Positions 3,047 through 18,982 of a stretch of 64,000 bases of DNA are shown piece after piece. Below the pieces are notes generated by a model. It made no database searches and was not told the origin of the DNA. It saw nothing but the letters and a program-made list of their open reading frames with translations. Both the position numbers and the translations under genes were made by a program. The stretch covers positions 229,279-293,278 of the IMG/VR virus record IMGVR_UViG_3300033049_000066, one strand, 5' to 3'. Every line of letters starts with the position of its first letter. Within the stretch, counting starts at the first letter, position 1.

Positions 3047-5017
3047 ATGGCTAAACGGAAAAAGAATTATTTAAATAACAAGGATATGCTCAAGGAAATT
3101 CACCTTAGCAAAATATCATATTGTGCGTTTACTGACAAGGTAGAGGACAATCAACAAGATTTCATCGTGGAAAGTGCTGACGCGATCTTCGGTACGCAGA
3201 ATGTAGAGGTTAAGAAAGAAACCGAAACCTCAGCTGCGGTTTTTGAAGACATCCCGGTAATACAGCTTGCGAGAAAAGCTAGGGCAGCGAGACTTACAAA
3301 ATTAGAAATTCCAACTGCGGTAGAAGATATAGTTGACACAGATATTGTATTTCGTGTAATGACGAACGAACACATTCCACGAGTCCCCAAGAAAAAATCC
3401 AAGGCACTACTAGCAAAAGAAGCAAAGCAAGCGAAATCCGACGCGATTTTTGACGAGCTTATGGATGGCGACGAGGATGGCGACGCTCCTACACCCACCG
3501 GGCCTGAGGTTATCTTGATCCCAATGCGTGTAAATTTTCCACCGTTTTTCCATTACCGGTTGACGGATGAACCGGGTGAACTAAAACTTGTCGGCAAATC
3601 CCACTGGCGTGGTGACTTAGAAACAGGCAGTTTCAACAAGACCAAGGGGCAAACTACAAACAATCTTGCTATGATGTACATCAAGCTCTGTGAGCGGTAC
3701 GGCACTAGAGGCAATTGGAGAGGGTATTGTGTAGATCAGGCCACAGAGGCTCTCACAGACCGTGGGTGGTTATTTGAAAATGAGATTACCGAAAATGATA
3801 AAATTTTATCATATAATGGCTCGACTATGGTTTGGTCTAACATTAATTCTATGTTTCGGGATAATTACAGTGGATTAATGCATAAACTTACATCTCGTAG
3901 CATCGATTCACTAATCACACCAAGTCATAAAATTGTAACCGATAAGGGGTTACTAAAGATTGAATATCTCAAAGAATCAGACCGGGTCGTTGTAATGGGT
4001 GATGCTGTGCCTACGGAGTTTGAGAAAACATACACAGATCAACTAGTTGAATTAGCTGGATGGATCATAACAGAAGGTAATTATCAACCCAAAAAGAAAA
4101 TTGTTACGATTTATCAAAACGAAGGTTCTTATGCCGACCGCATACGTAAATGTTTACATAACTTAAATTACTCGTTTTCTGAACGCAAATCTTCGAAATC
4201 CGAGAATATTTCATTTGCTATTAAGAGGAAGTACTGGGATGAAATCACAAATCTATTACCTAACAAAAATCTAACTATGGATTTTATTTTAAAACTTACG
4301 TATAATCAACGTGAATTATTAGTTAAAACAATGGTGGATGGTGATGGACACAGACACGGATTATTAATGCGATATACTCAGAAAAATAAAGAACACATGG
4401 ATCATTTTCAAACGTTATGTGCGCTAATTGGGTTAAAATCAAATGTTCATTATGTCGAGAATAAAATGTCATTCGGTAAGCCGGTTAACTATTATGTAAC
4501 AAATGTGTTTTCAAAACGAGGAAACTACACACGTGGATCGGCTATCGACATGCACGGTGGGAAAGACAATGGGAGTAGACACGTCGGCAAGGGGAAATTT
4601 TTCCACCCCAACAAGCCCACGGTGCAGTACGATGGTACGGTATGGTGCCCGGAGACTGACTACGGTTGCTTCTTAGCTAGGCGTAACGGAAAAGTATATT
4701 TGACCGGAAATACGTACAACGATGAAATGCAGGGGCAGGCTTTACTCCAGCTTTCGCAAATTGGACTTCAGTTCAATGAGCTAAAATCGCAGAATCCATT
4801 TGCGTACTACACTGCCGCGGTCACGAACAGTTTTACCCGGGTCTTAAACATTGAGAAAAAGATGCAAAATATCCGAGACGATATCCTCGAGTCAAATGGG
4901 CTCACTCCTAGCTGGACAAGGCAATACGCGAATGATGCGAAAAAGATGCCCCAGTATGATTACAATCTAAATGATCCCAGGAAGAAAAAGGCCAAAGAAG
5001 AGGAACCTAAAACTTAG
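3047..5017 (+). CDS. gp55: T4-like late sigma factor, intein-containing
   Basis: N-terminal NYLNNKDML. After intein removal the protein reads NWRGY|TYNDEM...QFNELKSQNPFAYYT...F.RVLNIEKK. It lies upstream of gp47/gp46 as in T4. Confidence 0.88.
   Translation: MAKRKKNYLNNKDMLKEIHLSKISYCAFTDKVEDNQQDFIVESADAIFGTQNVEVKKETETSAAVFEDIPVIQLARKARAARLTKLEIPTAVEDIVDTDIVFRVMTNEHIPRVPKKKSKALLAKEAKQAKSDAIFDELMDGDEDGDAPTPTGPEVILIPMRVNFPPFFHYRLTDEPGELKLVGKSHWRGDLETGSFNKTKGQTTNNLAMMYIKLCERYGTRGNWRGYCVDQATEALTDRGWLFENEITENDKILSYNGSTMVWSNINSMFRDNYSGLMHKLTSRSIDSLITPSHKIVTDKGLLKIEYLKESDRVVVMGDAVPTEFEKTYTDQLVELAGWIITEGNYQPKKKIVTIYQNEGSYADRIRKCLHNLNYSFSERKSSKSENISFAIKRKYWDEITNLLPNKNLTMDFILKLTYNQRELLVKTMVDGDGHRHGLLMRYTQKNKEHMDHFQTLCALIGLKSNVHYVENKMSFGKPVNYYVTNVFSKRGNYTRGSAIDMHGGKDNGSRHVGKGKFFHPNKPTVQYDGTVWCPETDYGCFLARRNGKVYLTGNTYNDEMQGQALLQLSQIGLQFNELKSQNPFAYYTAAVTNSFTRVLNIEKKMQNIRDDILESNGLTPSWTRQYANDAKKMPQYDYNLNDPRKKKAKEEEPKT
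3728..4711 (+). mobile_element. Intein (328 aa) with LAGLIDADG homing endonuclease in gp55
   Basis: Starts CVDQATEALTDRGW. Block B ITPSHK; endonuclease motifs LAGWIITEG and MVDGDG. Ends VWCPETDYGCFLARRNGKVYLTGN followed by T(+1). Confidence 0.92.
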
Positions 5018-5040
5018 CCCGACGGATATACTCTAAACAT

Positions 5041-5069
5041 TTGCGATTGTTGTTGTTTTATCGTATAAT
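5041..5069 (+). promoter_or_regulatory. sigma70-type promoter for gp47
   Basis: TTGCGA-17 nt-TATAAT, flanked by an inverted repeat. Confidence 0.65.
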
Positions 5070-5153
5070 ATGTTTAGCGTATATTCACCAGCATGGAATA
5101 GATCCTAGCAACCGGCAGAGTTGTAGATGTACGTAAATGACGGATAATAATAA

Positions 5154-6167
5154 ATGAGTCAACTGTTTAAGAAGGCAATGATCTTCACTGATATACATTT
5201 TGGGCTAAAAAGTAATAGTCAGCAGCATAACAAAGATTGTGAAGACTTTGTGCAATGGGCAATAAAAACCGGCAAGGAGCATGGCTGCGAGACTGGCATG
5301 TTCTTGGGAGATTGGCATCATCATAGATCATCAATTAATTTGCAAACTCTAAACTACAGTTTACGAAGTCTGGAACGGTTAAATGATGAGTTTGATAATT
5401 TCTACTTTATTCCTGGCAATCATGATTTGTACTACCGCGACAAGCGTGATATACACGGCATTGAGTGGGCTAAACATCTTCCAAATATAACAATTTGCAA
5501 TGATTGGTTTCATCAAGATAATGTATCAATTGTTCCGTGGTTGGTCGGCGACGATTACAAAAAATTAATAAAAATAAAAGCCAAGTACATGTTCGGCCAC
5601 TTCGAGCTTCCGCACTTTAAAATGAATGCGTTAGTTGAGATGCCGGATACTGGCACTGTGAAAAGTTCGCAGTTAGCAAATGTCGAAAAGGTCTTTAGTG
5701 GGCATTTTCACATGAGGCAGGTTCGTGGCAATGTCACGTACATCGGCAATTGTTTCCCGCACAATTTTTCGGATGCTGGGGATGACCAGCGTGGGGTGAT
5801 GATTCTCGAGTGGGATAAGGAACCGAAATTTTTTGCCTGGCCTGATCAACCCCTATACAAGGTCGTGAATTTAAGTACGCTCCTTGACGATGCGGATTCT
5901 ATTCTCGGACCGAATATGCACGTGAAGGTCAATCTCGACATTGACGTCAGCTATGAAGAAGCAAATTTCATCAAGGAAACTTTCGTCGAGAAATATAAAC
6001 TGCGTGAAATTAGTTTGATTCCTTTGAAGGAACAAGAATTTGAAGACGATAATAATCAGGCTGTCTCGTTTAACAGTGTTGATACTATCATACACGAACA
6101 AATCGCCGCAATCGAAAGTGAGTTTTATAAAACTGGATTGCTAATGGAAATATATAACAACCTTTGA
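5154..6167 (+). CDS. gp47: Recombination nuclease subunit (Mre11/SbcD-like)
   Basis: Metallophosphoesterase motifs DIHFG, LGDW, GNHD, GHFE, SGHFH. Confidence 0.95.
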   Translation: MSQLFKKAMIFTDIHFGLKSNSQQHNKDCEDFVQWAIKTGKEHGCETGMFLGDWHHHRSSINLQTLNYSLRSLERLNDEFDNFYFIPGNHDLYYRDKRDIHGIEWAKHLPNITICNDWFHQDNVSIVPWLVGDDYKKLIKIKAKYMFGHFELPHFKMNALVEMPDTGTVKSSQLANVEKVFSGHFHMRQVRGNVTYIGNCFPHNFSDAGDDQRGVMILEWDKEPKFFAWPDQPLYKVVNLSTLLDDADSILGPNMHVKVNLDIDVSYEEANFIKETFVEKYKLREISLIPLKEQEFEDDNNQAVSFNSVDTIIHEQIAAIESEFYKTGLLMEIYNNL

Positions 6168-6976: not shown

Positions 6977-9940
6977 TTGATTAAAATTAAAAGTTTGGTT
7001 GTAAAAAACTTTATGAGTATCGGAAACGCAAGTCAAGCCGTGGACTTTGACCGTGATGACTTGACCCTCGTTCTTGGGGAGAATCTTGATCTTGGGAGCA
7101 ATGGTGCGAGAAATGGTACCGGGAAGGCGCAACCGTTGTACTCAAAAATAAAAACACCCGGTGGCTGGGCTACAATGGGCGATATGGTCGTTGGGCAAGC
7201 CATCACCACACCTACCGGGGGCAGTGCTGAGGTCAGTGGCGTTTTCCCACAGGGTGAGGTAGAAACATACAGAATTCATTTTTCTGATGGTAGGCAAACA
7301 GATGCTTGCAAAGACCATCTGTGGAAAGTTTACTCGCACTCGTTTAAAGATAAATGGCAGGTTCTAACTACTGCTGAGTTAATTTCGCATACAGAAAAAT
7401 ATAAAAATCATAAAAATAAATCTACGTACTACAAATATGTTCCGTTGATTATCCCAGAAAATATTGCAGACATTAAGTTGCCATTTGATCCATATTTCCT
7501 TGGCGCGATGCTCGGAGACGGTGGCATGACCGTACACGGTATCGGGTTTACAACTGCTGATGACGAAATGTTTGAAAATATGAAACAGGTTCTGCCAGAA
7601 AATTATCAGATAACAAAAAATCATTATGATGACTACGGATATTCATTAAAATTTATTAATCGAAAAAAGTACAGCACATTACGACTAGGATTATCTGCGC
7701 TGAAGTTATACGGAACGAAATCAGCAACGAAATTTATTCCAGAAATATATAAAAATGCCTCCATTAATCAAAAAATAGAACTTATACAAGGGATAGTAGA
7801 CACCGACGGTTATGTCGCAAAGAAAAACGGGTCACTTTCTATTACAACCGTCAGCAAGCAAATGGCGGATGATATTCAAGAAATAATACAGTCTATTGGC
7901 GGGATCGCTAAAATAAAAATTAAAACGAACTGTGGGTATAAAAAAGACGGCATATTTATACCATGTCAGGACGCCTACACCGTTTGCATCACATACCATA
8001 CTCCAAAACTTTTAGCTCGACTTAGCCGGAAAAAAGATCTCTTACCGGGTGAGAATTATCAGTACAAAAATAGAAAATTAAGAATCGATCATATAGAATA
8101 TATTGGTAAGATTGAATCCCAATGTATTATGGTCGAACACTCAGATCACTTATACATTACAGACAATTATATTGTTACACATAATACGACGTTGATAAAC
8201 GCTCTGAGCTATGGGCTGTACGGCAGTGCGCTTTCTGAGATTCGCGTGAACAATCTTGTCAACAAAACTAACAGAAAAAATATGCTCGTGTCGGTTGAGT
8301 TCAGCATCGACGAGGCGCAGTACAGAATTGAAAGGGGCAGATCTCCAAATGTGCTGAAATTTTACAAAAATGATCTTGAGCAGAAGGATGAGGATGGTGC
8401 GCAGGGCGAGAACAGGGAAACGCAAAAAGAGATAAATGATCTACTGGGGCTGAGTCACGCGATGTTCAAACACGCTGTCGCGCTAAACACCTACACCACC
8501 CCGTTTCTGTCTCTCAAGAATGCTGACCAGAAAGATATTATCGAGGAGCTTCTCGGAATCACTGTCCTTACCGAGAAGGCCGAGGCACTGAAAGCGGTCA
8601 ACAAGATCACAAAGGATGGGGTCAAGGAAGAAGAATTCCGGCTTGAGACTATCATGAAGGCGAATCTGCGAATTGACGAACAGATTGAGGGGTTGAAGCG
8701 CCGGCAGCGGATGTGGCAGATCTCCCACAATAACACAGTAGATGGTTATACTTCAAAGATTGAAAAATTGATGGTGGTCGACATCGAAGACGAGATTGCT
8801 AAGCATAACCGCAATGCGAAAATCCGGGTTGATACTGACAAGAAAAACACCAAGGGCAAAGCAGCAGTTGACAAATTTAACGCTGAACTAAAAATTCAAA
8901 AGGATCGTGAGATTGCCGCCATTGACAAATTCAACTCTGCTGTGCTAGAATGTAATCGGTGGATCAAACAAATTGAAAATGATACAAAGGCCCAGGAGCG
9001 TCGGTCGCAAGCGTTACAAAGAGATATTGATTTACTAGAAGATCACAAGTGCCACGCCTGCGGGCAGGATCTCCATGATGAGACACAGGAAGCAAATATT
9101 GCGGCTAAGAAAACAGAATTAACAGAATGTGCAATGCAGATTCTATCTAATCAAACGCAGGATACAGAGCAGAAACTAAAACTTGCGGACCTTGGCTCAC
9201 CGCCGGTAACAAAAGAAGCTAAGAAAGCCAAAACGTTCAAAGAAGAGCAGTACAAGGGCAACCTCACTTTTTACAAAACCATCGACGAGGCTCACGGACA
9301 CAAGAGCTCGCTCGCTACGCTCACATCGCAGCTTGAAACCGCTGTAGACACTGCTGATCCGTACGTTGAACAAGTAGACGAAATGGTTGCTAGTGGGCTA
9401 GTTGAGGTCTCTTACGAATCTTTAAATCAGCTTGTCGAGCTACAAGAGCATCAGGCATTTCTACTAAAACTTTTAACGAGCAAAGATAGTTTCATTCGCA
9501 AGAAAATCATTGAGCAAAATTTAGCGTACTTGAATGGGCGGCTTACATATTACCTCACTGAAATCGGGCTTCCGCATCGTGTGCGGTTCATGTCGGATCT
9601 TAGCGTTGAGATTACAGACTTGGGCAGAGACCTGGACTTTGACAATTTGTCACGGGGTGAGAGGACTAGGCTGATTTTGTCTCTGTCTTGGGCGTTTAGG
9701 GATGTCTGGGAAAGTCTGTACAGCCACATCAACTTACTTTTTGTAGACGAGCTTGTCGACAATGGACTTGACACAAATGGCGTCGAAGCCGCTATTAAAA
9801 TTATGAAAAGTATGGCGAGGGAGCGTGGGAAAAGTGTTTGGCTGGTCTCGCACAGAGAAGAATTAATTAGCCGCGTGAATAACACAATGAAAGTGATTAA
9901 GAGCGGTGGCTACACTGAATACAGTAGCGAATTAGAATAG
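6977..9940 (+). CDS. gp46: Recombination ATPase (Rad50/SbcC-like), intein-containing
   Basis: KNFMS; Walker A NGTGK|TT; zinc hook CHAC; signature LSRGE; Walker B LFVDE; H-loop VSH. Confidence 0.95.
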   Translation: MIKIKSLVVKNFMSIGNASQAVDFDRDDLTLVLGENLDLGSNGARNGTGKAQPLYSKIKTPGGWATMGDMVVGQAITTPTGGSAEVSGVFPQGEVETYRIHFSDGRQTDACKDHLWKVYSHSFKDKWQVLTTAELISHTEKYKNHKNKSTYYKYVPLIIPENIADIKLPFDPYFLGAMLGDGGMTVHGIGFTTADDEMFENMKQVLPENYQITKNHYDDYGYSLKFINRKKYSTLRLGLSALKLYGTKSATKFIPEIYKNASINQKIELIQGIVDTDGYVAKKNGSLSITTVSKQMADDIQEIIQSIGGIAKIKIKTNCGYKKDGIFIPCQDAYTVCITYHTPKLLARLSRKKDLLPGENYQYKNRKLRIDHIEYIGKIESQCIMVEHSDHLYITDNYIVTHNTTLINALSYGLYGSALSEIRVNNLVNKTNRKNMLVSVEFSIDEAQYRIERGRSPNVLKFYKNDLEQKDEDGAQGENRETQKEINDLLGLSHAMFKHAVALNTYTTPFLSLKNADQKDIIEELLGITVLTEKAEALKAVNKITKDGVKEEEFRLETIMKANLRIDEQIEGLKRRQRMWQISHNNTVDGYTSKIEKLMVVDIEDEIAKHNRNAKIRVDTDKKNTKGKAAVDKFNAELKIQKDREIAAIDKFNSAVLECNRWIKQIENDTKAQERRSQALQRDIDLLEDHKCHACGQDLHDETQEANIAAKKTELTECAMQILSNQTQDTEQKLKLADLGSPPVTKEAKKAKTFKEEQYKGNLTFYKTIDEAHGHKSSLATLTSQLETAVDTADPYVEQVDEMVASGLVEVSYESLNQLVELQEHQAFLLKLLTSKDSFIRKKIIEQNLAYLNGRLTYYLTEIGLPHRVRFMSDLSVEITDLGRDLDFDNLSRGERTRLILSLSWAFRDVWESLYSHINLLFVDELVDNGLDTNGVEAAIKIMKSMARERGKSVWLVSHREELISRVNNTMKVIKSGGYTEYSSELE
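7127..8185 (+). mobile_element. Class-3-type intein (353 aa) with LAGLIDADG endonuclease in the gp46 Walker A motif
   Basis: Starts with Ala (AQPLYSKIKTP). WCT signature: DHLW, SQCIMV, VTHN. Endonuclease motifs LGAMLGDG and GIVDTDG; +1 residue is Thr. Confidence 0.92.
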
Positions 9941-10471
9941 CTACTTATAATAAAAGTTAGTAGTACTAAACTCCTCGAAGAGTTTACTCAAACCTTTTGT
10001 TAATTTACGAGATTTGGGATAAGGTGGTACTTTCTTTTTAGGATATTTTGCTTTGAAAAGTTTGATCATTTTATTATAGGATGATTTTTTAACTTTTTGA
10101 GCTTTAGGAACCTCGGATGGATGGATATAAACCTCCCCGTCTTCGGTATACGCACCGGCTTCTAAGTAGTCAGCTAAGTTGCGTAAAAATGTAGGAAGAT
10201 CGGTCGGGTGTTTGGATTCATCGGCCCCATAATAACGTTTCCAATTATTCGTTATTTTTCCTTCAATGGCATTTGCCCGGAACTCAATCGCATTGCGAAT
10301 TGTTCCTTTGTTAGGTGCGTAAGGCTCGGAATTTAGCTTATGTATATGATCTAACACGCATTTGTCGATAGGGATTTTAATCCCCAGTAATGGACAAACT
10401 TCGTTATTTTGTTTATGAAGTTTTTCTTTAAGGATCTTGATATCCTTGACTTTGAGCTCGACGTATTGCAT
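9941..10471 (-). CDS. Endonuclease VII (gp49)-like His-Me nuclease
   Basis: Q...CPL...VLDHIH...G.IR.....AN.IEGK...FLRNLADYL...IHP. Late promoter at 10478-10483. Confidence 0.8.
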   Translation of the reverse strand: MQYVELKVKDIKILKEKLHKQNNEVCPLLGIKIPIDKCVLDHIHKLNSEPYAPNKGTIRNAIEFRANAIEGKITNNWKRYYGADESKHPTDLPTFLRNLADYLEAGAYTEDGEVYIHPSEVPKAQKVKKSSYNKMIKLFKAKYPKKKVPPYPKSRKLTKGLSKLFEEFSTTNFYYK

Positions 10472-10539
10472 TGTAATTATTTATTGTGTAAAACGAACAC
10501 TAGAAAATTTTTAAGATGAGCGCAGCGGACTAAATATCA

Positions 10540-11240
10540 AGCACGTGGTAGATGCATAGAAATGGCATGCTACTTCTAGGATTTTTATTATGGACATTTT
10601 GACTATACGTCGAAGAAGTAAAACAGGTATAAGGTTGGTGGGCCGAGCGTAATTCCACCGTGCAAGTATTATGAAATGTACCGCTGCGCAAACGTCTTGC
10701 TGTTTAGGCGCCTCAAATTGACTACCCGAAAGGATGCTTTAAAGTGACGCGCCCATGTGCGATCAACTTTCAATTGTTGTAAATAGTAAGGAAATATGAA
10801 AATAATTCCGAGGCAAATAATTGTAAATTGCGAGATAACAGATGTCCTGTTTGCGAACAGAAACATGGCTTGCGAATGCAACTTGTCTAGTGAGATGGAT
10901 GCCATATTTGAATGGTGGAAGACCAATCAAACACCCATCTGCACATAACATCAGCTAGGTATAAGGCGGTTATGTGCGCGTTGAGCACTGCATGTAATGA
11001 GGTGATAGCAAAACCTACCTTTCTTAGTTAAGCGATTAGTGGACTAAGTGTTGTATTATACCTAGCGAACGTTCCATGCGTTTTAGTCGTCGTCTTTGGC
11101 GGCGTGGCACCTTGGCTCACTCTCCAATTCGAACTCATTCGCTAACGCTCAATCATATGCATTACTTCTATTTTAATTTGTGTTTACTAATATGAGTGTT
11201 GAAGCGATAGCGACAACACGAATAGATCTGCTTCAGATCT
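10540..11240 (+). ncRNA. Putative large structured non-coding RNA; boundaries and strand uncertain
   Basis: About 840-nt gap with no convincing long ORF. TAAATA at 10531, many hairpins, and an 11-bp loop-distal pairing (10954-10964 with 11056-11066). Confidence 0.55.
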
Positions 11241-11313
11241 TCTATACTAAACTAATTGCTTAGAAACAAATGGAATGTCACGACCACGACTTGCGTTAAA
11301 AAGTTTATATTTT

Positions 11314-11550
11314 CTAAAAAAACGGAAGGCCGGATTTTTGCGTGGTTTCGAGATTATCCTCTGCGATCTTTGTAATTAGCTTTCGTTCTGCCGAACTTAA
11401 ATTCATTGCGGTGTCGTACTGAATACCCCCACGCATAGCCCATGCATGATGTAAGCATTCTTTTCGTATAGCGAGGGATTCTTTTTCTAGTTGATCAACG
11501 AACTTGGATATTTGCTCAGAGTTTAAGATTGTTAGCTTTGATCGAAAAAA
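11314..11550 (-). CDS. gp51/T-like tail chaperone extension, probably reached by -1 frameshift
   Basis: WAMRGGIQY..AMNLSSAER motif. No good start of its own; lies in the -1 frame behind the heptamer T TTT TTC. Confidence 0.7.
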   Translation of the reverse strand, partial: FFRSKLTILNSEQISKFVDQLEKESLAIRKECLHHAWAMRGGIQYDTAMNLSSAERKLITKIAEDNLETTQKSGLPFF

Positions 11551-12434
11551 GATGTCATGTCTAACGTAAAGTGCTGATCGTACGTATGATTGCAAACATG
11601 TGTATTTGGCTTAGTATCTTTGGCGCCTTCTTCATCATTATCTAGTACTTCATCTTTGATTAGCTCGGTACATTTAATTTTTAGAGGCTTAAGAATTTCT
11701 TTAGTCTTTTGTTCAATGACTGAGGCTTTGATCTTTTTGTACATAGAAGTTTCACAATTCTTTAAAAATTCTAATATATGTTCTTCTTTACTAACTGTAC
11801 ACTCTGGTGTTGTAATTGAGGCTATATTCTTCGCGAGCGTAGTGAGTGTGTACTCTGATACTTTTTTGAACGTGTCAGAGAGTAATTTAATTTGATCTTC
11901 TTCTTTTAGTGTAGAATCAACCAATAAGTGACTCAGCTTCTGCTCTTCAAACTGTAATTTATTGTTTTCGTTTAAATCTTTGTAAGTCATTGGCTTAAAT
12001 GCGATAGTTAAATCACCTATAACCATCACTTTACTGTAGTCAGTTGGTACAATTGAGTCAAGAACCACTCGTAAATCGACGTTGTACCCAGCAACATTAG
12101 CACAACTTGGGCATTTGGTTTCAATTTCCATATCATGGCCGAAGCTAGCGATTCTAATCGCGCACAGTACGGCGGTTAAGTCCGTTACCGGCATCGTCCA
12201 AGCATCTTTAATGGAAGGAATACAGCTTTCTATAACCTGTACGACCGCTGATCCATTGAACAAAGCGTCCGGGGTTTTATACGTTATCTCGTCAATCGCC
12301 GTCATGGGTAAAACCGGCACTTCACCAGTCTCAGGTAGATCAAGTTTTCCATCACCGTAACCTTCACCCTTGCTTGGTAATGCTAAGTGAATAGAGGCGG
12401 TTCTAAAGTACTGCGATAAAGGATTTTCGCTCAT
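11532..12434 (-). CDS. Baseplate hub assembly/tail assembly chaperone (gp26-like)
   Basis: NPL..YFR...LPS.G, PMTAIDEI, AIRIAS.G and CPSC motifs. Divergent from the tape-measure gene. Confidence 0.8.
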   Translation of the reverse strand: MSENPLSQYFRTASIHLALPSKGEGYGDGKLDLPETGEVPVLPMTAIDEITYKTPDALFNGSAVVQVIESCIPSIKDAWTMPVTDLTAVLCAIRIASFGHDMEIETKCPSCANVAGYNVDLRVVLDSIVPTDYSKVMVIGDLTIAFKPMTYKDLNENNKLQFEEQKLSHLLVDSTLKEEDQIKLLSDTFKKVSEYTLTTLAKNIASITTPECTVSKEEHILEFLKNCETSMYKKIKASVIEQKTKEILKPLKIKCTELIKDEVLDNDEEGAKDTKPNTHVCNHTYDQHFTLDMTSFFDQS

Positions 12435-12511
12435 TAAATTATTTCCATAAATAGTTAGTACGTCTATTTACCAAAGACATAAACGGCGTATAAAATAATG
12501 GATAACAGTTA

Positions 12512-14461
12512 ATGGCAGACGAAACGCAAGAAGAAATTGAACAACGAGAAAAGATGGTTGAGGTTTTGCTTGAGCAGATTCGCGCTGGTGAAAAAAGCAT
12601 TGACGCAACATTAAAACGGTACTTAGCGGAAACCAAAACCGGTAAGGCCATTAGCGAAACTCACACTGCAACTACGAAACTTACTAAAGGATTCACGAGC
12701 TCAGCACAAGCACTTGCAGGCAGTACCGGCAATCTCAACGATCTCTCGTCAGTCGTCAGCGGGACCATTGGAGCGATTACAGGATTGCTAGGATCCATTC
12801 CGCTAGTCGGGCCGGTCATTGAGAAATTTGGTGATGTTGCTGCCGAGACAATGACATTTGCGATGGGGCAAATTCAAGCAGGATTTTCATCGTTTCAAGA
12901 ACTGTCAAAAGTAGGATTAATCGGCGCAAATGGCATCGACGGAATGTCACAGGCAATGCGAGACAGCAACATACCACTCGCGACCTTTTCAAAATTGCTA
13001 ACCACTAGCTCACAGGACTTAGGGTTCTTGTCATCATCCGCACTAGCCGGCAGCAAGAAATTTAGCAAATCGTTAGCGATTATGTCCGACGATGCTGGCA
13101 AACCACTACGTAGATTAGGGTTAAGCGTTGAAGAGATAGGCGAAACAATCATTGACTTCCAGGTGATGCAACGACGTCAAGGAATCCTCGGGCAGTTGAG
13201 CCAAGACCAGATAAAGAAAGGTACTGAAGAATACGCAAAAGAATTAGACTTAATCGCAAAATTAACTGGTAAGTCCAGAGCAGATGTACAGAAAGAACGC
13301 GAAGCAGCAATGAGTGATTCACGCTTTCGTGCTTCAACAGCTGAGATGGATAATAAAACACGCCAGAAGCACATGGACGTATTAGCACTGATGACCGACC
13401 CAGCGCAGAAACGTGCGTACATGGATAACGTCTCGGGCTTTACTAACACCGCAGCGGCCATACAGCAAGAAATCAATGGCATGGGCTCAACAATTCGGAA
13501 AGTAATTGATGATATCAACGGAGGGGGTAGCGCAAAAGATGCCTTCAATGCTATAATTTTACAGTCACGAGAAGTAACTAAAGTCGGCGGAATGCTCCAC
13601 CAGATGGCAAAAGTCATGGAATCTGATGGAAACCCGTTTGGTAGCTATGCTGATGCTGCCGACATGGGAGCAAGGGAATTAGTCACCACAGCTGATATTC
13701 TTAAGGCTCGCAATAAACTAATGGATACCGAGGGAACAAAAACTGATAAGATAGTTACGTCAATGATGGAATTACAAGAATCCACCGCCGCATTAAATAA
13801 TTTGTTCATCGGAACTGACGGAGCCATTGAGGTAATATCAATGTTTAGCAGCGTAATGCACAAGACAATCAAGTTCATTGAAGGCGAACTATTAGACAAG
13901 AGGAGTTTTACTGAAAAAACTGGCGAATGGTTCTCCGATTTCACTAGTGGGACCACAGTCGATAGCGTAATTAGTACAATGTCAAACCAGATAAATTCTG
14001 CCCTCGGCACTAATGATAGTCTAGGCAAGTATGTCGGCGGTAAAGTGCACGATGCGTTTGGTGACAAACCAAAATTTGCGAATGCGCCAGCCCGGGATTT
14101 CGAGTACGTTAACGGAGTTCCTGAATTCGCATCCCGCAGCCAAGGTGCCACCCCGTCTCCAATAACGCCGCAGGTAGCCCAAGTTGCCGCAGCAAGATCA
14201 ACCCCACAAGTTGATCCAATTGCCCTTCAACGCAGAATCCTAGCAAAAGAAAAAGAACTCGACGCTGGACTGAGTAAATTTAGAATTAAAGCTGAATCCG
14301 ATCTTTCAAAATCATTAAATGCGGATGAAAGAGCAGGCGGCCGAGAAATGATGTCAGAGCTAATGCAAATTCGTAACGAATTGAAGAAATTAAATAACAC
14401 CGCAACGAAGCAAAATCAAGGCATTGCAAATGTTGATAATTCGATTAAACGGGCCAGTTAA
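12512..14461 (+). CDS. Tape measure-like protein
   Basis: 649 aa, Ala/Gly/Ser-rich and helical, with LAKLTGKSR-type motif. Adjacent to the tail chaperone; late promoter at 12448. Confidence 0.7.
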   Translation: MADETQEEIEQREKMVEVLLEQIRAGEKSIDATLKRYLAETKTGKAISETHTATTKLTKGFTSSAQALAGSTGNLNDLSSVVSGTIGAITGLLGSIPLVGPVIEKFGDVAAETMTFAMGQIQAGFSSFQELSKVGLIGANGIDGMSQAMRDSNIPLATFSKLLTTSSQDLGFLSSSALAGSKKFSKSLAIMSDDAGKPLRRLGLSVEEIGETIIDFQVMQRRQGILGQLSQDQIKKGTEEYAKELDLIAKLTGKSRADVQKEREAAMSDSRFRASTAEMDNKTRQKHMDVLALMTDPAQKRAYMDNVSGFTNTAAAIQQEINGMGSTIRKVIDDINGGGSAKDAFNAIILQSREVTKVGGMLHQMAKVMESDGNPFGSYADAADMGARELVTTADILKARNKLMDTEGTKTDKIVTSMMELQESTAALNNLFIGTDGAIEVISMFSSVMHKTIKFIEGELLDKRSFTEKTGEWFSDFTSGTTVDSVISTMSNQINSALGTNDSLGKYVGGKVHDAFGDKPKFANAPARDFEYVNGVPEFASRSQGATPSPITPQVAQVAAARSTPQVDPIALQRRILAKEKELDAGLSKFRIKAESDLSKSLNADERAGGREMMSELMQIRNELKKLNNTATKQNQGIANVDNSIKRAS

Positions 14462-14510: not shown

Positions 14511-16235
14511 ATGGCAGATAAAAAGAATGCTGGTGGATGGAAGAAGTATTTTAAAGTAGCAGACACCTCAGGAACAATGAGTCCGATTAGTGGGCTTGGG
14601 AATATCAATGGGCAAGTTGGGTTTAAAAACTATCAGAGTAACTTACCAGAGGTGTACACCGGTCACCCTAATAGAATCGAACGTTACAATCAGTACGAAG
14701 CAATGGATATGGATAGCGAAGTTAACGCTTGCTTAGATATCATATCTGAATTTTCAACTCAAACAAACGAGCAGAACAATACCGCATTTGACTTCTTCTT
14801 TAATGAAACACCGACCGACAACGAAATTAACATTATTACTCAGCAACTTAATCAATGGGTGAAACTGAACGAATTTGATAAACGCATTTTTAAAATATTT
14901 CGCAATACAATTAAGTACGGCGATCAAGTTTTTATACGTGATCCAGAAACATTTAAATTATTTTGGGTTGAGACAAACAAAATTTCAAGAGTAATTGTAA
15001 ACGAAAGTGATGGTAAAAAGCCCGAGCAATACATTGTTCAAGACATAAATCCAAATTTCGAAAACTTAACAGTCGCAGCAAAAACAACAACTGATTTTCA
15101 ATCAGGTATGCCAAACCAAGGTTACACCGCGCCACAATCGTACACAATACCTGATCAACAAGGTGCGAGTACAGGTGGTCGTTTTTCAATGTCGCAGACA
15201 GAATCCGCTGTTGACGCAGAGCATATTGTACACATCAGCCTTACAGAAGGGCTAGACTACAACTGGCCTTTTGGACAATCAATACTTGAGCAAATATACA
15301 AAGTTTACAAACAAAAAGAATTACTTGAAGACGCTATTTTAATATATCGCATACAACGAGCACCGGAGCGCCGCATTTTTTATGTTGACACAGGCGATAT
15401 GCCAGCACATTTAGCAATGGGATTTGTTGAACGTATTAAGAACGAAATACACCAACGCAGAATACCAACACAGAGCGGTGGAGCAAACCAACTGGATGCG
15501 AGTTACAATCCAATTTCAATGAATGAAGATTACTTTTTCCCGCAAACCGCTGATGGACGTGGCTCGAGAGTAGAGACATTACCCGGTGGACAGAATCTGT
15601 CTGAGATCGACGACCTACGTTACTTCAACAACAAAATGGCACGTGGACTTCGAGTACCGTCAAGCTACCTACCAACTGGCCCAGATGACAGCCAAGGGAC
15701 ACTAAACGATGGACGCATGGGAACGGCACTGATCCAAGAATTCCGCTTCAATCAGTACTGCGAGAGAATACAAAATACTATCATCACGAAGCTAAACACA
15801 GAATTCAAGATGTTTTTACACTGGAGAGGCTTCAACATTGATTCCAAAATCTTCGACTTAAAATTTAACAACCCGCAAAACTTTGCTAGCTACAGACAAA
15901 CAGAGCTCGACGCCACGCGCCTTGGCAACTTCGGTGGTGTTACAGATATTCCTTACATGTCTAAGCGATTCGCCCTGAAACGCTACTTAGGGCTATCAGA
16001 AGCAGAGATGGTCGAGAACGAAAAAATGTGGCGCGAAGAAAATAACGTTCCAGATGAATCAGTTACTGGCGGCGCCGGTGATGACTTACGTGGTGTTGGT
16101 GTCACTCCTGGGGGAATGGACGCAGACTTGGGAGACCTAGATGATTTTGAAGGCGCCGACGAGCTTGACCTTGATCTCGACGGTGGCCCAGATGAAGCAG
16201 GTGCCGGAGCCGAGATAGATGTCGAAACGCCATAA
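14511..16235 (+). CDS. gp20: Portal protein
   Basis: LLEDAILIYRIQRAPERRIFYVDTG, EDYFFP and ETLPGGQNL motifs. Confidence 0.97.
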   Translation: MADKKNAGGWKKYFKVADTSGTMSPISGLGNINGQVGFKNYQSNLPEVYTGHPNRIERYNQYEAMDMDSEVNACLDIISEFSTQTNEQNNTAFDFFFNETPTDNEINIITQQLNQWVKLNEFDKRIFKIFRNTIKYGDQVFIRDPETFKLFWVETNKISRVIVNESDGKKPEQYIVQDINPNFENLTVAAKTTTDFQSGMPNQGYTAPQSYTIPDQQGASTGGRFSMSQTESAVDAEHIVHISLTEGLDYNWPFGQSILEQIYKVYKQKELLEDAILIYRIQRAPERRIFYVDTGDMPAHLAMGFVERIKNEIHQRRIPTQSGGANQLDASYNPISMNEDYFFPQTADGRGSRVETLPGGQNLSEIDDLRYFNNKMARGLRVPSSYLPTGPDDSQGTLNDGRMGTALIQEFRFNQYCERIQNTIITKLNTEFKMFLHWRGFNIDSKIFDLKFNNPQNFASYRQTELDATRLGNFGGVTDIPYMSKRFALKRYLGLSEAEMVENEKMWREENNVPDESVTGGAGDDLRGVGVTPGGMDADLGDLDDFEGADELDLDLDGGPDEAGAGAEIDVETP

Positions 16236-17753: not shown

Positions 17754-18386
17754 ATGAGTATCTTACAAGAATATTTAAATTATGACGCAGCTAATGTTGA
17801 GCTTCTCACTGAAGCCAACAGCAGCGGCGGCAAAGATTTATACATGAAGGGCATCTGCATTCAAGGCGATCAAAAAAACGCCAACCAACGCATTTACCCT
17901 GCAAGAGAAATCACAACAGCCGTTAAAACACTTAACGAACAAATCAACGGTGGCTATTCTGTCTTAGGCGAAATAGACCATCCGGAAGATTTAAAGATCA
18001 ATTTAGACCGCGTGTCGCACATGATTACAGAAATGTGGATGGAAGGCGCTAACGGTTACGGTAAGTTAAAGATACTTCCAACTCCGATGGGCAAAGTTAT
18101 TGAAACAATGCTACAGTCAAAAGTTAAATTAGGCGTTTCGTCTAGGGGAAGTGGTAATGTTAACGAAGCCACAGGACACGTCAGTGAATTTGAAATAATC
18201 ACTGTAGATATCGTAGCACAGCCATCTGCTCCGGAAGCGTATCCGACAGCTATATATGAAGGCATCATGAATATGAAAGGTGGCTTGAAGTTGTTAGGTA
18301 TTGCAGAAGACGCTTGCGAGAACAAACGTGTACAAAGATATTTGAAAGAAGGCGTAATTGCGTTAATTAAAGATTTAAAGATTTAA
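17754..18386 (+). CDS. gp21: Prohead protease
   Basis: NANQRIYP, GEIDHP, GVSSRGSG, DIVAQPSAP. Confidence 0.96.
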   Translation: MSILQEYLNYDAANVELLTEANSSGGKDLYMKGICIQGDQKNANQRIYPAREITTAVKTLNEQINGGYSVLGEIDHPEDLKINLDRVSHMITEMWMEGANGYGKLKILPTPMGKVIETMLQSKVKLGVSSRGSGNVNEATGHVSEFEIITVDIVAQPSAPEAYPTAIYEGIMNMKGGLKLLGIAEDACENKRVQRYLKEGVIALIKDLKI

Positions 18387-18982
18387 TGACAGAAGCGTTT
18401 GTATATAAGTGGACACAAATATCAACTAAGAAATGGTACATTGGGTCCAGAACAGCAAAAGGTTGTTCTATGCAAGATGGGTATATTTGCTCTAGTAGAA
18501 TTGTTAAACCTTTAATTTTAGAAAATGCAGTTGAATGGAATAGAGAAATACTAGCAGTTGGCACACCAGATAATATGCGCCAGCTCGAAAGTAAAATGCT
18601 ACAGCAGCTTGATGCAAAAAATGATCCGATGAGTTTTAACGAATCAAACGCAGATGGCAAATTTAGTACCGCGGGGATTGAACCGTGGAACAAAGATAAG
18701 AAAACGGGGCACACGCCGTGGAATAAAGGACTTGCTAAAGAGCTTCAGCCAGGATACGGATTGAAGCATACTAAAGAAAATAAAGAATTATTTAGTAAAA
18801 ATCAGCAAGGAGCGAGTAATTCTATGTATGGTGCTACGCCGTGGAATAAAGGTAATACAGGTAAGAAGTGGTTTAACAACGGCTCAATTGAAAAAACTTT
18901 TATACCAGGTAACGAATTGGAAAGTTTTGTTGTAGGAAGATTGACAAAACCCAATATGAGATCGAAAGATCTTAAAATTTAG
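18386..18982 (+). mobile_element. Free-standing GIY-YIG (Seg-like) homing endonuclease
   Basis: FVY...WYIGSR...Y.CSS; PWNKG repeats; NUMOD3-like HTKE. Confidence 0.85.

Follow-up and report, generated by a model that had tools for sequence, protein, structure and literature searches.

In the lambda G/GT system (Xu, Hendrix and Duda 2004) and the P2 E/E+E' system (PMC3091744), a -1 ribosomal shift on an X_XXY_YYZ heptamer a few codons before a stop codon appears to yield a short and a C-terminally extended tail assembly chaperone (TAC) with a shared N-terminus. P2 uses the heptamer T_TTT_TTG, without a hairpin. Although such frameshift-encoded pairs are regarded as near-universal in long-tailed phages, no pair of this kind appears to have been identified for T4-type phages. 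T4 does, however, encode two paralogous proteins, gp26 and gp51, that are both listed as baseplate-hub assembly chaperones, and gp51 is absent from the particle (PMC3004832). Both match Pfam family PF12322 (T4_baseplate) over their full length, and gp51 has an additional C-terminal tail (PF28602, Gp51_C). In T4, these short and long forms are separate, divergently transcribed genes with no slippery site and no -1 ORF; T4 also makes gp26' from an internal AUU start.

Here, we describe a locus of a ~300-kb marine jumbo phage in which a single PF12322 gene is probably decoded into a short and a long product by a -1 frameshift, although no protein, ribosome-profiling or reporter data exist for any member of this group. 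We found no description of the site in literature searches, which did not cover subscription-only papers.

A slippery heptamer in a gp26-type gene

The window analyzed is a stretch of 64,000 nucleotides from IMG/VR record IMGVR_UViG_3300033049_000066. An earlier note, made from the sequence alone, had proposed that a gp26-like gene in this window shifts into the -1 frame at T_TTT_TTC to give a fusion of ~373 aa, and had named heptamer conservation in homologs as a test. We confirmed the sequence features (Table 1), and the proposal is supported, although the coordinates given in the note (11314-11552) cover the extension and the heptamer rather than the whole gene. The gene ends ACA TCT TTT TTC GAT CAA AGC TAA, and the -1 frame reads FFRSKLTILNSEQ...AWAMRGG...GLPFF. 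After the heptamer, the first ATG, GTG or TTG in this frame is codon 38 of 78 (counted from Phe-Phe), and the only upstream start is a TTG at 11595, 62 nt inside the gene, with no Shine-Dalgarno sequence. The predicted fusion comprises 295 + 78 = 373 aa.

Table 1. Coordinates of the features at the PF12322 locus (positions within the window)
Feature	Position	Strand	Description
PF12322 gene, 0 frame	11532..12434	-	Short product, 300 aa; stop TAA at 11534..11532
Slippery heptamer	11544..11550	-	T_TTT_TTC in X_XXY_YYZ phase, 0-frame codons TCT TTT TTC; two tRNA-Phe can re-pair one base back
-1 frame extension	11314..11544	-	76 codons read after the shift (CGA at 11544..11542 through TTT at 11319..11317); stop TAG at 11316..11314
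Weak local stem	11493..11543	-	GAUCAA (11543..11538) with UUGAUC (11498..11493), 6 bp, zero spacer
Tape-measure-like gene	12512..14461	+	649 aa, divergently transcribed; tape-measure-like by position
Portal protein gene	14511..16235	+	phrog_213, E 2.9e-104; same synteny in related loci
Endonuclease VII gene	9941..10471	-	phrog_423, E 4.8e-22; same order as in RaK2, 121Q, Serratia BF and CBB

The 300-aa protein matches PF12322 with 48.2 bits against a gathering threshold of 24.5 (E 1.4e-12; residues 55-258 on model positions 38-203) and the baseplate hub family phrog_150 (E 1.6e-15). PF12322 was its only significant Pfam match, and no TAC family was listed even at E <= 1. Pairwise BLASTP against T4 gp26 or gp51 was not significant, so that this homology rests on the Pfam profile. 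Four invariant cysteines (C108, C111, C255, C281) suggest a zinc ribbon. The AF2 model has a pLDDT of 85.8, but Foldseek against the PDB found no match for the N-domain, VIA-align against 48,161 chains gave only generic helical-hairpin hits with Z < 8, and a PDB profile search gave noise. The extension is predicted to be helical (AF2 pLDDT 83). Pfam and PHROG scans of the extension found nothing even at E <= 10, in a Pfam copy that lacks the PF28602 model; a PDB sequence search with the extension profile gave only noise (E > 0.2), and Foldseek against viral predicted structures gave nothing below E = 1.8. A nucleotide search of the locus against cultured phages also found no match.

Conservation of the heptamer and of the -1 frame

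By itself, the motif is not beyond chance, as TTTTTTC occurs 27 times in the window against 28.3 expected; its significance comes only from conservation. NNT TTT TTC followed by G is invariant at the nucleotide level in the window and in 82 of 82 relatives at 30-67% protein identity. The preceding codon varies (AGT/AAT/ACT/TCT/CGT/CAT, encoding S, T, N, R or H) but always ends in T, while nearby third positions are near saturation. From codon usage, the probability of NNT TTT TTC given Phe-Phe is about 0.075 per independent lineage. The Phe-Phe motif is itself conserved in the protein family, which explains part of the T-richness, though not the phase or the codon choice. Of six cultured Rak2-like jumbo phages, five (RaK2, 121Q, Serratia BF, CBB and PA5oct) have the same heptamer, and the sixth, XacN1, has T_TTT_TTT.

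The extension is 78 aa counted from Phe-Phe in nearly all relatives (79 in Phosso), has 12 invariant columns, and is conserved from the first residue after the shift (FFRxRLL...), yet it has no conserved start codon, the first one lying at variable positions 3-38. A variant contig from an independent seawater sample carries 24 substitutions over 11203-11715 but no indel or substitution at the heptamer. Nine of these substitutions fall in the extension, and seven are silent in the -1 frame, against 7-8 amino acid changes plus stops in the other frames.

In contrast, we did not find a convincing downstream stimulatory structure in the window or its closest relatives. RNAalifold on the 120 nt after the heptamer gave no consensus structure, and Rfam found no hit in 9500-13000. 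The weak local stem in the window (duplex -8.4 kcal/mol, z -0.9) is not a convincing stimulator. Many relatives instead pair a box 4-14 nt after the heptamer with a segment 60-83 nt downstream, with co-varying variants (family mean -17.8, z -1.76; mean best stem 6.8 bp against 5.2 +/- 0.13 under synonymous resampling), although this last statistic is optimistic because related sequences are not independent.

Alternative explanations for the -1 reading frame

We considered whether the -1 ORF might be an independent gene of about 8 kDa, translated by termination-reinitiation or coupling. Atu_ph07 and Phosso have an ATG overlapping the stop (ATGA), and 121Q has an ATG at extension codon 5, so that some independent initiation is possible in these three phages; public annotations call a separate hypothetical protein in 121Q, Serratia BF, CBB, XacN1 and Phosso. 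However, all homologs with an ATG near the stop keep the slippery site, and most members, including the window, have no ATG, GTG or TTG before codon 8-38 of the extension and no Shine-Dalgarno sequence, yet residues 1-38 are conserved. Gene callers give ragged N-termini, with products of 40-98 aa. Furthermore, this model does not explain the nucleotide-level invariance of an in-phase X_XXY_YYZ motif, and natural in-frame fusions join the extension to the PF12322 domain at exactly this point. We therefore consider an independent gene unlikely.

Transcriptional slippage, in which RNA polymerase adds one U in the T6 run, would encode the identical S-F-F-R junction, and the 7-T run of XacN1 is compatible with it. 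Nevertheless, six T is probably short for efficient polymerase slippage, which usually seems to need 8-9 or more, and the run is fixed in one phase (NNT TTT TTC) in 88 of 89 genes, although NNV TTT TTT would also encode Phe-Phe with six T. Polymerase slippage, unlike ribosomal slippage, has no phase requirement. We regard this alternative as improbable as well, albeit without transcript data, as a search of sequencing runs found only DNA contigs, from one study of seawater metagenomes, and no RNA. Homopolymers are error-prone and in-frame long forms exist in other phages, but an artefact or a decayed gene is very unlikely: the same T6C occurs in 80 independent metagenome assemblies, in at least eight finished cultured-phage genomes and in the variant contig of the second sample, which excludes an assembly error; the in-frame forms have a different junction; and purifying selection acts on both frames.

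Correspondence with T4 gp26 and gp51

We determined that the extension is homologous to the C-terminal tail of T4 gp51. Aligning the extension profile with a profile of gp51 tails using hhalign gave a score of 30.3 (E 9e-6, probability 83%, 37-57 columns), whereas reversed and shuffled controls reached at most 14.4, and the nearest Pfam-bearing ESM Atlas cluster, an independent language-model lead, is Gp51_C. This homology rests on one profile-profile comparison, together with the fusions described below and motif inspection; comparison with the single T4 gp51 sequence was uninformative (probability 1%). The N-domain of the window protein is about 90 aa longer than its T4 counterparts, and the first helix of its extension is ~16 residues longer than that of the gp51 tail. 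The gene 26 / 51-27-28-29 region of T4 has the same divergent layout, and T4 gp26 shares the Phe-Phe motif near its end (...EFFELL), but with the non-slippery codons TTC TTT.

A profile search further identified ~320-351-aa proteins of uncultured T4-like phages in which the extension is fused in frame behind a PF12322 domain (E 1e-16 to 1e-22 against the extension profile). Their junction is xFR, with a single Phe and non-slippery codons. All six such loci examined also have an adjacent short PF12322 paralogue upstream, which largely lacks the cysteines and whose C-terminal Phe codons are non-slippery in five of six; the synteny is the same (portal, tape-measure-like gene, then the PF12322 genes divergently). 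Conversely, nine genomes with the heptamer carry exactly one PF12322 gene: RaK2, 121Q, PA5oct, Atu_ph07, four IMG/VR genomes that are 93-100% complete, and the window's own record, although the latter is only 83% complete, so that a second gene cannot be formally excluded in it.

Taken together, these data are best explained by a programmed -1 frameshift, a reading in which we have high confidence. Most ribosomes would terminate at TAA, while a fraction slip back one base, with both tRNA-Phe re-pairing on UUU. The short form would correspond to T4 gp26 and the long form to gp51, and the gene would set a fixed ratio of two assembly factors with a common N-terminal domain; the slippage itself, its efficiency, the chaperone role and the binding partners are inferred. 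The designation of the site as lambda G/GT-style in the earlier note holds as an analogy of mechanism and logic, not of family membership. Unlike lambda G/GT, the gene does not lie between the tail tube and tape-measure genes on the same strand, no tube gene is adjacent, and the N-terminal domain is much larger (about 295 aa).

The recoding site appears to be shared by a whole clade of jumbo phages, including the cultured RaK2, 121Q, PBECO4-type, CBB, Serratia BF, PA5oct, XacN1 and Atu_ph07, yet it is not annotated in the seven public records examined (RaK2, 121Q, Serratia BF, CBB, PA5oct, XacN1 and Atu_ph07, plus Phosso), where the downstream piece is either missed or called as a separate hypothetical protein. 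Recognizing it would correct annotation in hundreds of metagenomic jumbo-phage genomes. The three-way comparison of one gene plus a frameshift, tandem short and long genes, and divergent gp26 and gp51 argues that both isoforms are required, and the analysis offers a testable hypothesis for the function of gp26 and gp51 in a genetically tractable system. More tentatively, PF12322 proteins may be the long-sought tail/hub assembly chaperone pair of T4-type myoviruses, with one frameshifted gene as the ancestral state or a recurrent solution. T4 and its relatives would then be a case where duplication replaced recoding, and the essential, catalytic and so far unexplained role of gp51 would be that of a GT-like factor whose tail recruits a hub or tube component.

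The earlier note had described the divergent neighbor as a tape-measure gene. We find it tape-measure-like only by position, variable length and a weak language-model lead; PHROG, Pfam and BLAST searches and comparison with T4 gp29 gave no confirmation, and a complex prediction with the 300-aa protein returned no verdict (score 0.02), which is evidence neither for nor against binding. Its homologues in related loci are 573-968 aa long. The syntenic CBB_251 is a virion protein, while the CBB virion mass-spectrometry table lists neither CBB_250 nor CBB_249 and lacks the gp26-like protein.

Gene context and the slippery site

Upon inspecting the end of the gp26-like gene, we determined that an ATG-initiated ORF encoding 300 aa ends ACA TCT TTT TTC GAT CAA AGC TAA, and that the run T_TTT_TTC within it is in X_XXY_YYZ phase with that ORF (coordinates are listed in the table below). 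From the heptamer onward, the -1 frame reads FFRSKLTILNSEQ...AWAMRGG...GLPFF. The first ATG/GTG/TTG after the heptamer is codon 38 of 78, and the only earlier start is a TTG 62 nt inside the upstream gene, which lacks a purine-rich ribosome-binding site. A -1 slip would give a product of 295 + 78 = 373 aa. Everything that the earlier note described in proposing a -1 frameshift that yields a ~373-aa fusion is therefore present. However, the heptamer on its own means nothing, as TTTTTTC occurs 27 times in the window against 28.3 expected from shuffles.

Coordinates of the features discussed in the window and in the sequences used for comparison
Sequence	Feature	Coordinates	Strand
Window	SbcD-like nuclease subunit gene	5154-6167	+
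Window	SbcC-like nuclease subunit gene	6977-9940	+
Window	Stretch holding only short ORFs (53-85 aa), between the stop of the extension and the endonuclease VII gene	10472-11313	-
Window	Region covered by the variant contig	11203-11715
Window	Stop codon TAG of the -1 frame (frame open from 11595)	11316..11314	-
Window	Heptamer T_TTT_TTC	11550..11544	-
Window	gp26-like ORF (300 aa)	12434..11532	-
Window	Divergent intergenic region (77 nt)	12435-12511
Window	Prohead protease gene	17754-18386
Window	Homing-endonuclease-like ORF (phrog_314)	18386-18982	+
T4 (L090)	gp26 and gp51	3803-4429 and 4480-5229
T4 (L090)	Internal ATT (AUU) start of gp26'	4090
Two-gene phage L092	Short paralogue with the heptamer	820-1704
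Two-gene locus L098	Intein-interrupted portal gene	1-1709

The 300-aa product matches Pfam PF12322 T4_baseplate (E 1.4e-12, 48 bits against a cut-off of 24.5) as well as PHROG 150 'baseplate hub', whereas the extension matches no Pfam or PHROG family. The window is the end of a 293-kb IMG/VR virus record estimated at 83% complete, and the sequence is found in seawater metagenomes. On the plus strand, a 649-aa protein without family hits is followed by the portal gene, while on the minus strand the gp26-like gene is followed by its extension, a stretch of ~840 nt without long ORFs, and endonuclease VII. Just beyond the endonuclease VII gene lie SbcD-like and SbcC-like genes, the gp47/gp46-type recombination nuclease, and in the head module a homing-endonuclease-like ORF sits directly after the prohead protease gene.

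The same gene order is found in the Rak2-like jumbo phages RaK2, 121Q, Serratia BF and CBB. A gap of about 800 nt occupies the same position in 121Q, Serratia BF and CBB (about 365 nt in RaK2); Rfam finds nothing in the corresponding stretch of the window. In RaK2, the divergent neighbour is annotated as a virion structural protein similar to a tape-measure protein, and in CBB the neighbour, CBB_251, is in the virion with 29 peptides. For the 649-aa protein of the window, the tape-measure identity rests on this synteny, on homologues of very variable length and on a weak language-model lead to TMP families; it has no BLAST hit in cultured phages and no similarity to T4 gp29. Among relatives (loci L003-L082, minus strand upstream of the gp26-like gene), this tape-measure-like neighbour varies from 573 to 968 aa, with only 15-31% identity to the 649-aa protein, but has a conserved ...ELD..AKLTG..R..QE... 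motif and several invariant Gly. The divergent intergenic region contains GTATAAAATAATGG upstream of the plus-strand gene, which appears to resemble the T4 late promoter TATAAATA with one extra A.

Conservation of the heptamer and of the -1 frame

A scan of IMG/VR returned 80 loci whose product is 43-67% identical to the window protein, and tblastn with the extension added Agrobacterium phage Atu_ph07 and Sinorhizobium phage Phosso. In all 82, and in the window, the 0 frame reads NNT TTT TTC G, 3 to 6 codons before its stop. These eight nucleotides have zero entropy, while neighbouring third positions have 1-1.9 bits. The codon before the two Phe is AGT, AAT, ACT, TCT, CGT or CAT, that is, five different amino acids, always ending in T. 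Elsewhere in these genes, Phe is TTT 63% and TTC 37% of the time, and 32% of third positions are T; given Phe-Phe, the exact heptamer is therefore expected in about 7.5% of independent lineages. Furthermore, of six cultured jumbo phages at 26-31% identity, RaK2, 121Q, Serratia BF, CBB and PA5oct have T_TTT_TTC and XacN1 has T_TTT_TTT, and each has a -1 ORF of about 70-80 codons.

In contrast, T4 gp26 ends ...EFFELL with GAG TTC TTT GAG, and in phages with two PF12322 genes (see below) the short paralogues end in xFF or xF with non-slippery codons in five of six cases. The Phe-Phe motif is thus a protein feature of the family, but the slippery codon arrangement is kept only where a -1 ORF follows. 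In one two-gene phage (L092), the short paralogue still ends ...ACA TCT TTT TTC AAT GAC TAA, the same heptamer as in the window, but the -1 frame closes after two codons; this may be a relic of a former frameshift site.

Counted from FF, the extension is 78 aa in nearly all relatives and 79 in Phosso, with the consensus FFRxRLLxLDSExI...WYMRGG..Y...LS..ER..I..IIKDNLETTKKSGLPFF. Twelve columns are invariant, including R3 and L6 directly after the shift. The first canonical start codon after the heptamer falls at codon 3, 6, 8, 16, 17, 20, 34 or 38, depending on the sequence. In the short overlap, the conserved reading is the -1 frame (R-x-R-L-L), while the 0-frame tail varies in length and sequence. 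A variant contig from a second seawater sample has 24 substitutions and no change at the heptamer. Of the nine substitutions that lie in the extension, seven are silent in the -1 frame, whereas the other two frames would suffer 7-8 amino-acid changes and already contain stops. This also removes assembly error as an explanation.

Homology of the extension to the T4 gp51 tail and gene architectures

Both T4 gp26 (208 aa) and T4 gp51 (249 aa) match PF12322 from end to end (E 8.8e-64 and 3.9e-52) and are therefore paralogues; as the T4 record also annotates gp26' from an internal start, T4 makes three related products. gp51 has about 48 extra C-terminal residues, which precomputed Pfam annotation calls PF28602 Gp51_C in 90 of 94 gp51 homologues. 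An ESM Atlas search named Gp51_C as the nearest Pfam-bearing neighbourhood of the extension, although we consider this a lead only. We aligned 70 extensions and the tails of the gp51 homologues and compared the two profiles. hhalign gave score 30.3, E 9e-6 and probability 83% over extension 40-76, and with a permissive setting the alignment covered 6-76 against 6-62, while the reversed target scored 11.5 and thirty column-shuffled targets scored at most 14.4. By eye, the gp51 junction ...VFKLLxNPDEV... lines up with FFRxRLLxxDxEEI, and the gp51 motif Y-D-L-x-S-I-M-x-M-I-P-I-E-R lines up with Y-D-Q-A-L-x-L-S-x-x-E-R; the RaK2-type extensions (...YEMLLNMPVTER...) are intermediate. Modelled separately, the extension is predicted by AlphaFold2 to be a small helical unit (pLDDT 83), and neither this model nor that of the N-domain (pLDDT 85.8) has an informative structural neighbour.

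A profile search of 1.84 billion representative proteins with the extension alignment gave 434 hits at E <= 1e-3, which fall into two classes. The first comprises small ORFs of 40-98 aa with ragged N-termini, which is what gene callers produce when there is no real start. The second comprises proteins of about 320-351 aa in which the extension occupies the last 76 residues; these are PF12322 proteins with the extension fused in frame. Their junction is xFR, for example SSFRNKIL, encoded AGT TTC CGT, with a single Phe and nothing slippery. In all six of these for which we looked up the contigs, a second, shorter PF12322 gene (276-312 aa, no extension) lies immediately upstream in tandem, and where the contigs are long enough (three places for two of the genes), it sits behind the same divergent tape-measure-like and portal genes. 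The portal genes next to the two-gene loci (L098 and the NCBI GCA_015689235.1 contig) are interrupted by an intein (Portal_T4 / Intein_splicing / Portal_T4), with a faint HNH hit in L098.

Conversely, genomes with the heptamer have exactly one PF12322 gene: RaK2, 121Q, PA5oct and Atu_ph07, four IMG/VR genomes 93-100% complete, and the window's own, less complete record. T4, the positive control, has two. The family therefore shows three architectures that all deliver a short and a long form, namely a frameshift in one gene, tandem paralogues, and divergent paralogues (T4 26 and 51). This is the strongest argument that both forms are needed and that the heptamer is how one-gene phages make them.

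Inferred decoding, possible function and alternative explanations

No expression or protein data exist for any member. The decoding itself is inferred: with tRNA-Phe in the P site on UUU and tRNA-Phe in the A site on UUC, both can re-pair one base upstream on UUU UUU, whereupon the ribosome reads CGA (Arg) and 75 further codons. The nearly identical heptamer TTTTTTG drives the P2 E/E+E' shift without any hairpin (PMC3091744). In many relatives, a box 4-14 nt after the heptamer (typically CGCCUCC) is complementary to a segment 60-83 nt downstream, with co-varying versions: GGCUCUUUG/CAAAGAGCC in Atu_ph07, GCUCUUAGU/ACUAAGAGC in the relative L026, and CCUCU/AGAGG variants. The mean best perfect stem is 6.8 bp, against 5.2 +/- 0.13 when downstream codons are resampled synonymously, and 38 of 66 sequences have stems of 7 bp or more, against 9.4 expected. 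However, the sequences are related, so that this statistic is generous, and RNAalifold finds no single consensus. The window and its closest relative, L003, lack such a stem (duplex -8.4 kcal/mol, z -0.9), and for this window we claim no stimulator.

The 2010 T4 tail review lists gp26 and gp51 as hub assembly chaperones, and the CBB virion proteome lists the tape-measure-like neighbour but not the gp26-like protein or the small ORF. By analogy with G/GT, the shared N-domain, which has four invariant Cys that probably form a zinc ribbon, would hold one client, and the gp51-like tail would dock to another. The first client would probably be the tape-measure or hub core protein encoded next door, while the second would be a hub, tube-initiator or tube protein, although this last step is inference only.

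Independent translation of the extension is supported by an ATG near the stop in three phages, but is contradicted by the missing start elsewhere, by the conservation of the first 38 residues, by the phase-locked heptamer and by the in-frame fusions. Transcriptional slippage would give the same protein; however, six T is short, and although slippage by the polymerase does not need the run to be in one codon phase, 88 of 89 genes have NNT TTT TTC rather than NNV TTT TTT. Sequencing error or a pseudogene is excluded by the number of independent assemblies and by selection in both frames.

Mechanistically, this is a G/GT- or E/E+E'-type recoding site, but it is not a member of those chaperone families: it belongs to PF12322, has a much larger N-domain, and is transcribed away from the tape-measure-like gene instead of sitting between the tube and tape-measure genes. 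We found no paper that connects gp26, gp51 or baseplate hub genes of T4-like or jumbo phages with frameshifting, although prior description cannot be ruled out because most subscription journals were outside the full texts searched; the CBB and Atu_ph07 papers do not mention it. The main value of the site is the link that it makes between T4 gp26 and gp51. None of the eight public records inspected annotates a joined CDS. In further public records (for example, PV654397.1, LT960552.1 and LR596615.1), the gp26-like gene is annotated as 'portal protein' in Escherichia phage WPEC5 and as 'Lead, cadmium, zinc and mercury transporting ATPase' in Yersinia phages fHe-Yen9-03 and -04, which are probably annotation errors.
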